Below, in pieces: positions 54,000 through 64,000 of a DNA stretch of 64,000 bases. The DNA lies in NCBI GenBank assembly GCA_964188305.1, contig OZ076887.1; one strand, given 5' to 3'. A program made the position numbers and the translations under genes. Below the pieces are notes generated by a model that had not been told where the DNA came from, did not search any database, and worked only from the letters and a program-made list of their open reading frames with translations. This stretch comes from Podarcis bocagei. Taxonomy: Eukaryota. The number at the start of each line of letters is the position of its first letter. Position 1 is the first letter of the stretch.

Positions 54000-54123
54000 A
54001 GGGTGATGAGCTGGTGGTTCCTGAGACATCTGATAACAGCCGGAAGCAAATGGTCCGAAATATCAACAATAAACGCCGTTACTCATTCAGAGTGCCTGAG
54101 GAGGAGAGGATGCAACAGAGGAG
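54000..54123 (+). CDS. CDC42BPA: Exon (EGDELVVPETSDNSRKQMVRNINNKRRYSFRVPEEERMQQRR)
   Basis: tcctag|AGGGTG; GAG|gtcggt; ORF 53966..54172. Confidence 0.93.
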
Positions 54124-55391: not shown

Positions 55392-55509
55392 GGAGATGCT
55401 ACGAGATCCAGAAATGAGAAATAAATTAATTTCTAATCCAACTAACTTTAACCACATAGCACACATGGGCCCAGGAGATGGTATACAAATCCTTAAAGAT
55501 CTACCTATG
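55392..55509 (+). CDS. CDC42BPA: CRIB/PBD exon ([39 protein letters not shown])
   Basis: ttgcag|GGAGAT; ATG|gtaagt; CRIB motif ISxPxxFxHxxH. Confidence 0.96.
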
Positions 55510-58500
55510 GTAAGTATATGAGCGTGTGTCCACACATAGATGTTAGTGTTATATATAGTAGATAAAATGAACATATAGGCATTAAATTGTGATATAAATT
55601 GGAGTTGAACAGTTAGAAGGTTTTAATGAAATAGAAAGTGACTTTCATGGGCAGGGGCTTGAAAGTGATTAAAATAGAGAAATACAAATCTTAGGAACAT
55701 AGAAAGCTGCCTTAAGTCCTTTTCCCATCTTGCCAGCTTGTCTGTCCTGCCTAGATGTGATGTTTCAGGTTCTCACACAATAGGTGCTTGGAAAGACCTC
55801 TTCCTAAAATCAGTTTAACTAGAGATACCACAAGGTGAACCTGTCACTGGCAATGCCCAAGTTTACTGGCAGTGCCCATAAAGGTTAACGTTTAACAGTT
55901 AAATGTCAATGGCTGCATCTGTTGGACACACCAGTTCCACAGTTACGTTAATTAATGGATATGGAAACTCAGAACTAGTTTTAGGGAAGTCATTCCACAC
56001 AGTAACCTCATGGTAGCTTACACAATAGTTCTTGAACAGTTACAACCATTGGTGAAATGCAGAAATCAGGCTACCTGCCCCTCCCATTTTTTAAATTGTT
56101 TTGGGGGGGGTGCTTTGGTTGGGGAAATTTTTTTTTTAAGGCTGGTCTGCTTCTTAGTCTGTGTTGTATTTGTTTGGCGGGTGTAGGTGTTTTACCTGTT
56201 GTTGTGGTGGGAGGTGGGCTCTGAGCATCGACAGTATTTGCCTATGAAATGTGACCACAACAGTTTCTTAGATTTCCAAATGTGTCCTGGGTCCCAAAGG
56301 GTGAGTCACCCTGAAGTTCAGTATTCAGCAAAATAGCAGACTGGGCCAAGTTCTTGCTTCTGTCTGCAGGACACACAAGTGTCCCACCAGTTTTTTGTTT
56401 CTTCTCCAAATCTTCATATTATCTGTTCTTCCCTGCTGTATATACAAAAGCATTCTGTTTTCTTTTCCTGCATATTTTTCTAAATTATTTGAGCTATACA
56501 AGAGGACATGAGAGAAGAGAGGATCACGGCAGGTGCTAAGAAACAGTTCACTGTTTATTTTCTCATATGTGCAGTCAGCAAAATTCACAGCCCAGGATTT
56601 ATCTGTATAAAGGATTACCCTTTCCTGTGGTCTTCCCTCATGATATATACCAGACACAGAGTCCTCTTCCTCATATTTTCATGATTCTGTAGGTTTCAAG
56701 CATCCCCTGCCCCTGCCAACATAGTAAATGACAGCTCTCCCCACATTAGGGTTGCTGTGCTGATTTTGCCTGTTAAAAATTTGCCATCGTTCTAATTAAA
56801 CAGGCAAAAGAGGATCTTATTCAAATGCTTGCAGGAACATACTAGTAAATTATTTGACTTCCTTGGGTCCCTACAATTTTTTTCCTATTAAACTTCAGTA
56901 AAAATTAAACATTGCGCCTGATTTATCAGTATGCAAAGACACTATTTCTGTATAGTAACCAAGGTATATGCATCAATTAGTTTGAAGCTAATGGTTTTTA
57001 AAACGAATCAACTGCAGCAGATATTTCCATTTTTCCAACAACAACAACAAAATTAAGCTATTTAGTGCTTTATCAGAGGTGGGAACCTCCAGCCCACAGG
57101 TCAAATGTTGCCCACCAGGCCTCCCCATTGGGCCCATAAGGCCATTTTCAAGAAGCCACCCCCATGCTATGTGTGAGGCAGGTAAGGGCAGAACATCAAA
57201 AGAACAACTGGGGACCCAAAGCTCTCGACTATTCCTTTGTTCAAGCAAGGTGTGCAGTTTAAAGGAGACACACAGAGGGGGATGTTTGAAGGCATGTTCC
57301 AATCACATCAGCTGCTGGAACATGTCTTGCTCAAGGCATTCAAGCTTTGGAAGTATGAAGGAGCAAAGTGGAGGTGCCCTCCCAGGACATGGGAGCCTGC
57401 CTCCAATCTCCTCCCCCTCCACTTTTCCTACAAGCCTCTGTGGCTTGAAGGACAAACAGAAGGGGGAGGATGTCTGGAAGCCATTTATAAACATCCCTGC
57501 CCAAGGATATTTAAAGAAGGGCTGTTTGAAAGCCCCATGGTTTGCTTTGAAGTCCTGACAATTGGGGCTTCAAAGAGAGGCGTCACCTGAGGTCACTATG
57601 ATGTCAGGTGATAGGCTGGTGGGTGGCCCTTCAGTCAGAAAAGGATTCTGAGCCCTGTGGTATGTGGATAAGACATTATTTGAAGTTGACTTCTTATGAA
57701 ACTTTCCAGAGTTTGTTTTAATGAAATGCTACACCGAGGTTCTGTAAAAGTGAAACTAAACCCCATGGAAGTCATCATCCACGTGGACAGGAAGAGAAGG
57801 GGAAATTGTGTGGGCTCGATTCATTACTCAGGCTTGTTCAGGCTCGTCTGCACAGCACTCAATCATGGTTTAGTATTACATGCAAACAAAGCCAGTGTGT
57901 AAAGAGTCTGAAATATGATGGCAGTGTAATGTGATACACCGTTTTCCTTCCTGACGGGTCATACAATTCTGGTGGTCTTCCTGTTTGTGTATATGCAGTT
58001 CTAATTGAATAATTGGGCTCCATGGTAGCAGCAAGTAGGAAGCAAGAGTTCTTCAGTAAAGTAAATTAAAATTAACAGCTGGTCCTTAAGCAAAATCTCC
58101 TACAGGATTTTCCTCTTATATGGAAAACACTGAAATTAGAACATGATCTACATTTGAGGGTACATGTAGGGAAACTGATGGGCTTGTGAATGCTTTAGTA
58201 AACAAGGGTGTTGTTACGGAAAAATCTGGGTGCGGGGTTACTCTGCCCCCCCCTTCCGTAACAGTGTACATTCAGGGTTGTTCTCCCCTCCCCCCCCCCC
58301 CGAGTATCTAGATGTTTGGATGACTGGTACATGAAGGAGGATAGAGCCAAAAACATTAGTAACCCCCCCCCCCCCGGTACTGTGTTTTCTTGTAATCAAA
58401 TGTTTGCAGTTGTTTCGTTTATTAATAAGAAAATGGGAGTAGGATTTTGCCAGCAAATATACTTTCCCCTTTGTCTGAAGGGTACCATGCTAGGGAAGGG

Positions 58501-60147
58501 AGGCTTGGTTTTTATATTGCCATATTTTTATTCTAGTATAGCTGTCCCCAGCACACTGAGTGAGGGATGTATTCTAGTGCACCATTTGGAAACAGGGCTG
58601 TTGTTTCCCAGTGGTGGGGATGCCTACTAAAAGTGGCGCTTCTTAGGAAGATTAGCTGCATCAAGATATATGAGATCGGTGTAGGTTTGCAAGAGATAAT
58701 AATGAAAATTGCTCTTAATTTGTCTGTTTTAGTACTGTGATCATCAGTCAATTGAGTTCAGTCAAACTTGCTTCTCTGTAGACATGTATAGCATTTCACT
58801 GTTAATTTTGTGTCAGATCTTGGGTCTCTTTGGGTTATGTTCCATTCGCTTCTTTGTTATGAATGAGTCCAGGGAAAGTTTATTTTTCTAAGATAGTTTT
58901 AAAGGCAGTCTTGTTCTTTTTTTAAGAAAAAGAAAAACCCCATACACTTCAGCATCTAGCTTTTTACCACTAGATGGAGCTGATTTTGCAGGGTAAACTG
59001 TTATTAAATTATGTATTGAATAAATGACATTTTAAAAATCTACAAGGCTTACAATACATTTATATATAGATACAGGAATACATAAGGAATATCAAGAGCT
59101 GCTTTATACTGAGTTGGACATTTGGTCTATCTAGCTCAGTATTGTTTACACTGATTGGTAGCAGCTATCCCCCTGTTAGTTTACCTGTGTGGAAAAGGAT
59201 TTATTTTCTTTCTTTTTGTGATGGTCACACTTTTTCTTTTTGTTAACAAAGGGGAATGAAAGCAAAGGGGGAAAGAGAAAAAGCTATAGATTCATAAAAG
59301 TAAACGTTATTCAAAAACTAGACCACATAAATCTGGGAGGTGTACACAATGGATAATAATACAACAACTACTTTGTCATCTAACCTGCAACAAAAAAGGT
59401 ACATGAAGTCCTTGACTTGGCCAAGGCCTAACCCATGACTAACTTAATTCTGTAGGTTTAAAAAGGGTCTGTTCTATGACTTCGATACCACACATTTTTT
59501 TCCATTGTACAGTGGAATATGTACATCACATATTGTCAGGGGCTTCGTCGGATTGAATTGGCTGTGTGAGAATGTCTGGTCCTTTGTATACCATGTATGT
59601 TAAGCCCATTTGTGTGTCTCAGATGGGACTGTGAAAGTAAAGCCTCTGCAAACTGACCTACCTTGCACCACCCAAGGCGTGATGCCATCATAGAAGTCAC
59701 TAGTAACACATCATGCCTTTTTCAGTCCATTTGCTAATTCAAGCAGGCTGTGAGCAGGTGAGTTTCCAGTGAAGCTCCACTCTGAGTAGCACAGGTGGTA
59801 GGGGTAAGGAGGGGACAGGATTTGATCAAACATGAGCCAGGAGGGAAGAATTAACTGTGATGTTTGTAGTACATGTCAATGTCTGAAGGCAGGAGAAGGG
59901 CATATGCTAGACTGCAGTTCACATGCCACTGCTCACTCTCTTCAAGATTCTAATGAGTACTTTGGAGAGCGAGATTCTAAAATAAGAAGGTGATTGTGGT
60001 TGTGTATGTACAAAAGCAGTCTCTGGAAATGGGTCAGGCAGTATGCAGATGTTAAATATATATGCCTGTTGATTTACAAGCCTCATTTTTAATGAGCATA
60101 TGCTCCATGATTTGTATTCCTAAGATCACAGATATCCTCCCTCATTA

Positions 60148-60230
60148 TCTCTCTTTCTCTTTCTCTGTCTCTGTCTCTTTCTCTGTCTCTCTATCTCTCT
60201 CTGTCTTGCTCTCTGTATCTCTCTTGTCTT
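60148..60230 (+). promoter_or_regulatory. Extended CT-rich polypyrimidine tract of the second-CRIB exon
   Basis: ~83 nt of TCTC/TCTG repeats; no AG between 60131 and the acceptor at 60235-36. Confidence 0.7.
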
Positions 60231-60236
60231 TGATAG

Positions 60237-60422
60237 CCAAGCTCCCCTTATCCACCCTCTCATCATCACTCCCATCTCATCTCTTCTCCAAGCAACTTCG
60301 AGCACATCTATCACATGACTGTTAACTCAGCTGAAAATTTCCTCTCCCGTGATTCCATAAACCGTGCATATTCCCCACCTCTACGCTCTGTCCCTCGTAC
60401 ACCAGCCTTTATGAATATAAGG
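60237..60422 (+). CDS. CDC42BPA: Alternative exon with second CRIB motif, 186 nt (PSSPYPPSHHHSHLISSPSNFEHIYHMTVNSAENFLSRDSINRAYSPPLRSVPRTPAFMNIR)
   Basis: tgatag|CCAAGC; AGG|gtatga; phase 0-0; open frame with ISSPSNFEHIYHM; this frame is absent from the ORF track. Confidence 0.87.
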
Positions 60423-62274
60423 GTATGAATTGTTCAGCCAGGTGTTCCTGCTACTAACACTGTGTGGTGTTCCTTCTTTTTTGGCCTGGCTAATATCTGG
60501 CAAGATTTCAGCTTTGCAGTTGGCTTCATTTGTGTCTGGATCTTTCTTTTTTTCCTTTTGCTTCCCTTCAGCTACATTTCTCTTTAACCCCCAAATGAGG
60601 GGTGTGAACTTGGGCATCTACCAAAGTAGAAGTCCTTGACCTTTTCCCAAAATTACTAAGTATTCAAAACAACTTTTGCAATCCCACTAAAATTCACCAG
60701 AGAGTTTCCCAGTTCAAAGGACCCACAGTGAGGAGACTGGTGTCCTAAAACATGTTCGGTACATTGCGCATGCTTCCCCACAGTCCCCTTGTCCACTGAG
60801 ATTAATAGATTCATAGGGGACTTGAAGGAAGCCCAGGGGTGCATCTCAATAGGATTTATCTGATAATTATGGAAAGCTTGTTGCTGTATCCAAAGACTCA
60901 CACCCGTGGCTTTTCTTTGCAATAGACAAGACTTAAACAGTTGGATGGCTGCATGCCAAATGACAGAAGGAGGCCTATGTATTAGAGATAACCTTGTGTA
61001 TAGTGTTGGAATTCTGCATTTCAGTATGGTAATAGAATTCTGTCCACTTAATAGGAACATCAGTCTGATCTGATTTACATGACTTCTGCCACACTGTCCA
61101 TGTACATGCTGCTGTACAGGGTCCTATAACAAAAAGGAAACCCTGTGCCCTGCCATGAGGAGTTTGCAGTCCACATTCCAACTTTGCGGAGGCAGCAGAG
61201 GGAAGAAAGGAGAGATGGAGGCATATATATGTGCAGAGGCAGTCTTACATAACTCCCCCCCCCCCTTGAAATCTGTCTTTTTCTTGAAATGTTAGGTGAA
61301 GGCAAAGAGCTTCAGGGAGAGACTTAACTGGGAGATGGAATTGAAGGAGAGAACAGAGAACTCCTGCGCCTTGTGGATTTGGGAAGGGAAGGGAGTTCCT
61401 GATAAAGCAGGACTGGGGAAGTGGGGGTGCCATTTAAGGGAGCAGGAGGCTGTGCCTCTTCTTATTTCTAGTTAGGTCTGTAGAAGTAGGCTCTTGCTCT
61501 GTCAAGTACTTCATAAAAATGTTTTTTATTTGTGGCCTAACAATCCTGGTCTAAAGGGAGGTGTCCCTCAAATCACAGAACAAGAAGGCTGAGCAGGTGG
61601 CTGAGCTTCAGGTTTGTTACCGTTTGTGTCCTTTCGCATAATTCTCCTGCCAACAAAATTGTTTACTGAACTGAATGACCCCACTGAATGACCCAGCTAT
61701 ATTTTCTAAGAAAGCATCTTACATTTGGTGGCTGTGAAGTAAATTGCTTCTCTTTTCTGAAGTTAAAAGTTCTACTCAGTGAGCTGCAATCAAATTTATA
61801 TTTTCTACCTTTCAAAAGAATGACATTTCAGTCCTGCTGACAGAAATGCAGGATATATAAATTGTTATTATAAATAAAAAATGTATTTTTGCCATTGAGA
61901 TGTATTTGCTCTGAAGATTCGTTTGTTTACCTCTTTGGTCTGTTAAAAGAATAACATCGGTATTTTAAAGGAGATGCTATAGGATTAAGCTTCACTACCA
62001 TTTCCTAACTGCTGTTTTGAGCAACCATGGTTTTTCTTTTTGTGCATGACGTGAAAAGCTTCTCTTTCTCTGTTCTCTGATCTTAGCAGTGAGTTATACA
62101 AATGTTTAAGAAAAGAGCAGTGAGGCATTTGCTTTGAGGTAAAGAGCACCTAAGAATTAGATGGACTCTGCCTTTTAGTTAAATAAAATGAGTGTATCTT
62201 TCTCATATACCTGCAGCTGTAATAGTTGCCTCCACCTTGTTTTAAAATTGATTGTGGTCATTAGATCTACTTCC

Positions 62275-63055
62275 CCAAATAGGGTTACTCAGCCCTTAAA
62301 GGACCAGGTTCATCGCCTGGGGGTCACTTTGGGCCCACAGCTGTCCATAGAGGTGCAAGTCAACTCTGTGTCCAGGGTGGCTGTCTACCAACTCCATCTG
62401 GTATGCCAGCTGAGACCCTACCTGCCCACAGACTGTCTCGCCAGAATGGCACATGCTCTACTTATTTTCCGCTTGGACTACTACAATGCACTCTATGTGG
62501 GGCTACTTTTGAAGGTGACTCGGAAACTACAATTAATCCAGAATGTGGCTGCCAGACTGGGAGTGGCCGTCATGACCATAAAACACCAATCCGAAAAGGT
62601 CTACATTGGCTCCAAGTACAATTCAAAATATTGGTGCTGACCGTTAAAGCCCTAAATGACCTTAGCCCAGTATACCTGAAGGAGCATCTCCACTTCCATC
62701 ACTCAGCCTAGACACTGAGGTCCAGCTCCAAGGGCCTTCTGGCGATTCCCTCATTGCAAGAAATGAGGTTACAGGGAACCAGGCAGAAGAACATCTTCTT
62801 GGTAGTCACATGCACCCTGTGGAACACCTGCCCATCAGATGTCAGAGTTAAACAACTCTATAACCTTTCATAGACATTTGGAGGCAGCCCTCTTTCACGA
62901 CACTTTTAAAGCTTGATGGGTTTTCTCTCCCCCCACCCCCCATTCCCTCTGTACTTTTGTTGGAAGCCACACAGAGTGGTTTGGGCAACCCAGTCAGATG
63001 GGCAATGTATAAGAAAAATGTTGTTGTTGTCGTCATCATCATCACCATCAATAAA
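62275..63055 (+). mobile_element. L2-type LINE 3' fragment (ORF2 C-terminus and tail)
   Basis: LGVTL...RLDYYNALYVGL...LQLIQNVAARL, HWLQVQFKILVL; 3' stem-loop and simple-repeat tail. Confidence 0.85.
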
Positions 63056-64000
63056 TGCCCATCGTTCTGAGTGAAGGGGATGGGCTTGCAAGCTTCTTCT
63101 TTTACTCTGCATATCAGTGTGCATTGACTCTTCCCCTCATCCTCCAGAGTTCATATTAATAAAGTCTAAAATCATTCCTCCTTGCAATATCCCAAATTGC
63201 AATATCCCTGTATCAGATTCACTACTTACTGGATAGCTCGGGTGGCTATTGAATCAATTGAAAGCTTTCTAGCAGTCAGCTTCATCCTATAACCATATTT
63301 TGTTTTCTCCTGCCAGGAGGGTACCCAGAGTTGTTGATCACATTGTTAATGTGACTTGGGGAAGCAAGGAACTGACCTTTAATCTTTTAATTGAGAAGTG
63401 GGATCATAAACATACAGTGCAGAGGTGGCAAACAAACTGTTCAATGAGAGAAGCAGAAAACAATAATTAAGATTACTTAGCTCTTTATGCCTGTCAGATG
63501 CTAATTGGTGCATTGCATAAGCAGAAAAGCAATGGTAGAAGCGTGCATTATAGAATCATGTGTTATATGCAACAACAACAGAATGCTAGATCACCGACTC
63601 AAACTCAGAAAAACCTTTTATTTCATACATCCTTAAAATATGCCATTTATTCCAATTTTGTACAGGGGATAGTTGAATATAATCAAATAAATACTAATAT
63701 AATCAAATAAGCTGTGACTATCTGTTAAAGACCAATAAGCAATAAGCCCAAAGGAGTTTAATGAATTATAAGAGTGCATTTCTGAAATTTGAATGCATGC
63801 AGAGTACTAATTTTAGATGTGCTTATTACTGATTTGTTGAAAAACAAAACAAAAATGCAATGAAATATAATTCCTGAAAAATTATTCTTATTTTAATTTT
63901 ATTTATTTAATATATTTTTATCCTGCCTCTCAAAAAAAATAGCTTCACTAAGTGGCAATCGTGTAACTTGAAACTCACAGTAACCTTTAAATTGGGTTTT

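Follow-up and report, generated by a model that had tools for sequence, protein, structure and literature searches.

Recruitment by Cdc42 or Rac allows MRCK kinases to drive actomyosin contraction. The alternative splicing of MRCK-alpha is said to have been described by Tan, Cheong, Lim and Leung in 2003 (Gene 304:107), and the variants at the 3'-end reportedly differ in GTPase binding. Two reviews of MRCK describe a single CRIB (Cdc42/Rac-binding) motif and mention neither a second CRIB nor an exon for it. In human CDC42BPA, the gene for MRCK-alpha, a cassette exon termed E37 is among the splicing events confirmed by RT-PCR and is flagged as altering the 'PAK box Rho BIND' domain (PMC2764345). 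The primers that flank E37 (named 33-35) decode to HMGPGDG, with which the CRIB exon ends, and to MDQGSD, which lies in a C-terminal exon. Therefore, E37 directly follows the CRIB exon, as does the lizard exon described below. Both exons come right behind the CRIB exon, in what appears to be one and the same gene, and they may be orthologous, judging from position and annotation. The human CDC42BPA studies (PMC2764345; Tan et al. 2003) do not include non-mammals. Inclusion of a CDC42BPA cassette exon is lower in hypoxia, according to passages of a report in which the exon is not named (PMC5879922). Two CRIB motifs in one polypeptide are also found in the gelsolin-related protein gnrC of Dictyostelium (PMC8847673) and, according to part of a report on coronin 7, in this protein, where the CRIBs favour GDP-Rac (PMC4585930). 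However, gnrC and coronin 7 are unrelated to MRCK and their CRIBs are constitutive, so that the likeness lies in the presence of two CRIBs per polypeptide.

The DNA analysed in this study is a stretch of 64,000 nucleotides from the lizard Podarcis bocagei (contig OZ076887.1 of assembly GCA_964188305.1), which is termed the window. All exons and elements described are on its + strand. The exons at 44.4-55.5 kb encode a C1-like motif recognized by eye, PH_MRCK, CNH (E 5e-50) and CRIB. The Pfam matches to PH_MRCK, CNH and PBD fall on the exons at 44.8-55.5 kb, and the order C1 - PH_MRCK - CNH - CRIB is kept on one strand. The host gene is an MRCK kinase gene. When the CNH exon is searched, the best matches are mostly unnamed Logan ORFs, and the named 'MRCK alpha-like' matches, which reach 69-70% at most, do not tell alpha from beta. 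The gene appears to be of the MRCK-alpha (CDC42BPA) type, because its downstream exon, represented by NLRPQESRTVFSGSVSIPSITKSR (NLRPQESRTVFSGSVSIPS) in a second species, resembles the C-terminal exon of human MRCK-alpha. This second species, termed species 2, is probably a reptile. Here, 4449 nt separate the counterpart of the exon under study from the downstream exon, which starts in phase 0. The downstream exon is not seen between position 60422 and the window end at 64000, probably because it lies at such a distance in the lizard as well.

The canonical CRIB exon (55392-55509, 118 nt) begins at the third base of a codon, ends in phase 0 and is followed by a consensus donor (ATG/GTAAGT). It matches Pfam PBD with an E value of 0.001 and a score of 19.7 bits when searched alone. 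In the constitutive exon upstream of it (54000-54123), the last codon is cut after its second base; the peptide of this exon is also present in the bullfrog protein model PIO38374.1. A reading of the window from its sequence alone (the sequence-only reading) had proposed that a second CRIB is encoded by a 186-nt exon of phase 0-0 with AG and GT sites, 4.7 kb after the canonical one. This exon is located at 60237-60422. Its 62 codons are free of stops, the flanking sequences are ...tttgatAG on the 5' side and GTatga on the 3' side, and the intron that separates it from the canonical CRIB exon is 4727 nt long, in agreement with the proposal. Thus, 60237-60422 has the features of a cassette exon: an open frame, a length divisible by 3, AG and GT sites, and phases that fit both neighbours. 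The proposal that this exon can be used in addition to the first CRIB, but not instead of it, is correct as well, because exon 54000-54123 ends with two codon bases, while the canonical CRIB exon ends in phase 0 and 60237-60422 is of phase 0-0. The frame is missing from the ORF track, as had been noticed; the ORF list gives only the last 37 codons of the exon, as an ATG-started frame (60315-60428).

Codons 14-27 of the exon encode LISSPSNFEHIYHM, which is identical to the canonical CRIB at 10 of the 14 residues. The pattern [ILV]SxPxxFxHxxH is found at only two places in the six frames of the window, both on the + strand and both in this gene, against an expectation of 0.003 per composition-preserving shuffled window. 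The claimed likeness of the second motif to the first is thus borne out. PBD is the best Pfam family for the exon of the lizard (E 0.0043, 17.8 bits), of species 2 (17.5 bits) and of frog (20.0-20.1 bits). The gathering score of this family (PF00786) is 21.3 bits, and the exon stays below it in all of them, as does the canonical CRIB exon when it is searched alone. Relative to the core consensus I-S-x-P-x(2-4)-F-x-H-x(2)-H-V-G, the residues I, S, P, F, H and H are invariant in the four aligned sequences, and the terminal V-G is replaced by M-T. Among solved structures, the exon profile matches CRIB peptides only (PAK4 ISAPSNFEH, N-WASP and PAK1), with E values of 0.1-2. Such values are expected for so short a motif. 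The core of the exon is identical at 8 of 9 residues to the CRIB of PAK4, a peptide that is bound to GTPases in solved structures. The CRIBs of PAK4, PAK1 and N-WASP (PDB 2OV2, 5UPK, 2QME and 8S5T) share the core I-S-x-P-S-N-F-E-H with the exon, and all the defining residues are present, with the match spanning 13-17 residues. The lizard exon differs from them after the second histidine, where it has M-T-V-N instead of V/T-G-F-D, and it lacks a kinase-autoinhibitory context. The look-alikes retrieved from the ESM Atlas, with scores of 0.78-0.80, are weak leads.

When the 62 residues are compared by phmmer with 1.84 billion representative proteins, three kinds of true match are obtained: bullfrog protein models, a frog genomic contig and contigs of species 2. 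Four other matches of low identity in many stretches (P0001, P0003, P0005 and P0006) were set aside as low-complexity similarity in Ser/Pro/His-rich sequence. The lack of further matches does not indicate that the exon is absent elsewhere, because ORFs of short exons are seldom called on genomic contigs. Word searches with the 62-residue lizard exon or the frog exon return nothing or the query itself; their reach is bounded by the length of the query, and full-length isoforms fall outside it. The exon is contained in the bullfrog (Aquarana catesbeiana) model PIO38374.1 (P0002) and its longer sister PIO38372.1 (P0008). In PIO38374.1, the first CRIB exon, the 62-residue exon (PRSPYPSPLRHHSSLISTPSNFEHVYHMTVNSAENFLS...) and NPRTQDSR...FSGSVSIPSITKSR (NPRTQDSRSMFSGSVSIPSITKSR) follow one another in frame, and the exon junctions coincide exactly with the AG and GT sites of the lizard. 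This protein, the hypothetical protein AB205_0135800 (a CRIB domain-containing protein in UniRef), therefore carries an orthologous exon of 62 codons in tandem after the first CRIB and before the NPR...FSGSVSIPS exon. Its core and extension are nearly identical to those of the lizard, but its tail differs, with compensating indels, and the model is fragmentary and unnamed.

The exon is also recovered from genomic DNA. In frog, an ORF of a 1-kb contig (P0004) contains it as 186 nt between cAG and GTacgc. In genomic contigs of species 2 (P0007 and P0009), it is 186 nt long without indels and lies between gatAG and GTacga. Thus, the length, the frame and the splice sites are intact in both, and the frame-disrupting changes that would speak against a working exon are not found in species 2 or frog. 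The sequence-only reading had suspected that the exon is probably not new. This suspicion is justified, because a public protein model of frog already contains the exon and human CDC42BPA has a cassette at the same position: the second-CRIB exon is real, ancient and already known in kind. To call it hidden, as was also done, is an overstatement, since it sits in a public annotated protein. In our literature search with words of the exon peptide, no paper was found. With regard to the bullfrog models, both continue after ...SMSASSGL for about 150 residues that have no similarity to the MRCK tail. They probably read through the donor that ends the NPR...SASSGL exon and continue into the intron; the public models would thus be mis-terminated, and the gene model may be partly ab initio.

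Several other ORFs lie around the exon. The intron that separates the CRIB exons contains a pair of overlapping ORFs on the + strand (57079-57590; 159 and 117 aa), neither of which is conserved in species 2. Another overlapping pair on this strand, long ORFs of 150 and 142 aa (...LDYYNALYVGLLLKVTRKLQLIQNVAARL...), is located at 62188-62708; these have no Pfam match and resemble part of an interspersed repeat. In species 2, ORFs of 175 and 160 aa are present on the minus strand just downstream of the exon (L010, 5349-5876 and 6324-6806). They recur in the sequences L001-L008 and have no counterpart in the lizard window.

By blastn, 8.4 kb of the window (55600-64000) was set against 15 kb of the locus in species 2. 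Only 60206-60475 aligns (82%, E 3e-72). This block consists of the exon, 31 nt upstream of it and 53 nt downstream of it. Within the exon, the most conserved part is 60276-60347, which encodes the CRIB core LISSPSNFEHIYHM and the extension TVNSAENFLS (codons 14-37). In the four-sequence alignment, nearly all columns from L14 to S37 are invariant, as are SPY and HHS of the linker. Substitution rates were estimated for each exon region by the method of Nei and Gojobori, along the lines of the dN/dS comparison that had been suggested for relatives of the exon peptide. For codons 13-37, which comprise the core and the extension, dN is 0.035 and dS is 0.67 between lizard and species 2 (dN/dS about 0.05), and dN is 0.071 and dS is 1.06 between lizard and frog (dN/dS about 0.07). 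For codons 38-62, which form the tail, dN is 0.23 and dS is 0.25 between lizard and species 2, and dN is 0.65 and dS is 2.25, a saturated value, between lizard and frog. The tail (60348-60422) is rich in Ser and Pro and weakly constrained, and compensating indels in frog keep the length of 186 nt. These values indicate that the CRIB core is under strong purifying selection and the tail is relaxed, and that 60237-60422 is a functional, selectively maintained coding exon with a second CRIB-like motif. The exon would be tetrapod-wide, as it is bracketed by frog and lizard, and ancient. A double-CRIB isoform common to amniotes had been predicted. The conservation passes beyond amniotes to frog, where the model has the two CRIBs in tandem, and the lineages compared are the lizard, species 2 and frog.

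The intron sequences that flank the exon are conserved in introns that are otherwise unalignable. The acceptor-side flank (tgtctttgatAG) spans 60206-60236 and is part of the sole block that aligns with species 2. The donor-side flank spans 60423-60475 and begins with a donor (AGG/GTATGA) weaker than that of the canonical CRIB exon. A CT-rich microsatellite, (TCTCTG)n, with a period of 6 and 13.5 copies, occupies 60150-60229 and forms a long polypyrimidine tract of 80 nt that abuts the acceptor. At this site, species 2 and frog have a short CT-rich tract only. The donor-side flank contains a 17-nt element, TACTAAC-A-CTGTGTGGT, at 60452-60468 (+30 to +46). It is unique in the window, where none is expected by chance, and is kept in species 2 and frog. 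In its general form, TACTAAY-(N)-CTGTGTGGT, it begins 27-30 nt past the donor, and its counterparts are located at about 4924-4940 of L002 and at 767-782 of L009. The CU-rich tract is similar to sites of the PTB type, and ACUAAY to the QKI/STAR core. By these motifs, the upstream CU-rich tract and the downstream ACUAAY/GU-rich element are putative sites of splicing regulators of the PTB type and the QKI/STAR type, respectively. No mention of the TACTAAY-CTGTGTGGT intron element was found in the literature searched. A pairing of this element with the exon was also considered. In the RNAalifold prediction, the element pairs with AUCACAUG..UGUUA in the CRIB-coding sequence, but this helix is no better than those of shuffled sequences: of 500 shuffles, 116-222 reach the duplex energy of about -10 kcal/mol, and frog has its best site elsewhere. 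The pairing was therefore rejected.

The features described above make it likely that 60237-60422 is a conserved cassette exon of an MRCK-alpha-type gene, and that its inclusion would add an in-frame second CRIB, one that would be alternatively used and may bind GTPase. The inclusion is suggested to be alternative rather than constitutive, because the length is divisible by 3, the splice sites are weaker than those of the neighbouring exon, the intron flanks are conserved and a human cassette lies at the same position. The indirect signs of a regulated cassette include the 80-nt (TCTCTG)n tract, the 17-nt element and the donor AGG/GTATGA as compared with ATG/GTAAGT of the first CRIB exon. If the exon were constitutive in lizards and frogs, all MRCK-alpha transcripts would contain both CRIBs. 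Its presence in both bullfrog models (PIO38374.1 and PIO38372.1) is compatible with such a situation, which is nevertheless quite improbable: the donor is weaker and the acceptor is interrupted relative to the consensus sites of the first CRIB exon, a length divisible by 3 and conserved flanks of 31 nt upstream and 53 nt downstream in unalignable introns are hallmarks of conserved alternative exons, and the human exon at the same position is a regulated cassette (PMC2764345). Still less credible, to the point of being negligible, is the idea that the frame is open by chance or belongs to a duplicated CRIB exon that is in decay and always skipped. A long ORF is indeed absent from the ORF track at this position. 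However, exactly 186 nt with AG and GT are kept in three lineages, the exon is the sole conserved island in 8.4 kb with core changes that are mostly synonymous, and the motif is expected only 0.003 times per window. As far as sequence can tell, both a chance frame and a dead duplicate are thus excluded.

A more serious alternative, though an unlikely one, is that the CRIB-like motif of this real and conserved exon does not work in GTPase binding. The exon would then serve as a linker, as a segment for phosphorylation or docking, or as a modifier of the affinity of the first CRIB. The glycine at the end of the CRIB (H-V-G) is replaced by threonine (H-M-T) in all four sequences, the score stays below the gathering score of Pfam PBD, the insertion 14 residues after the core of the first CRIB replaces the sequence that is normally there, and the invariant SPY and HHS of the linker are not features of a CRIB. 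However, the canonical MRCK CRIB exon alone is also below the threshold. Furthermore, I, S, P, F, H and H, which define the core, are kept unchanged from frog to lizard, at dN/dS values of 0.05-0.07, and the core is identical at 8 of 9 residues to the GTPase-bound CRIB of PAK4. A GTPase-binding role of the exon is preferred, because the defining residues are intact and strongly constrained.

According to the preferred reading, a regulated cassette with a GTPase-binding motif, splicing would place the exon, in frame, after the canonical CRIB exon and ahead of the downstream exon (NLRPQESRTVFSGSVSIPS...). The 62 residues inserted would consist of a Pro/His-rich linker, the CRIB-type motif (ISSPSNFEHIYHM), the conserved extension of 10 residues and a loose Ser/Pro tail, and they would begin 14 residues past the core of the first CRIB. 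The tail of the kinase would thereby gain two CRIB motifs, with their cores starting about 41 residues apart. The second motif would bind a GTP-loaded GTPase of the Cdc42/Rac family, as other CRIBs do, and the second binding site may raise the avidity or broaden the specificity, in such a way that the valency or the specificity of membrane recruitment is altered. A further proposal, which is possible but decidedly tentative, is that the exon is an ancient vertebrate module that perhaps predates the split of alpha and beta, that its inclusion is set by a TACTAAY-CTGTGTGGT element about 350 million years old together with the CU tract, and that two Rho-family GTPases are sensed by the tandem isoform, which would work as a bivalent or coincidence detector. 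Bivalent behaviour of a tandem-CRIB isoform is not described in the literature searched. An isoform with two CRIBs could alter the number or the identity of the GTPases that hold MRCK at the membrane, and the conservation of the exon from frog to lizard suggests that the tandem-CRIB isoform matters to the animal.
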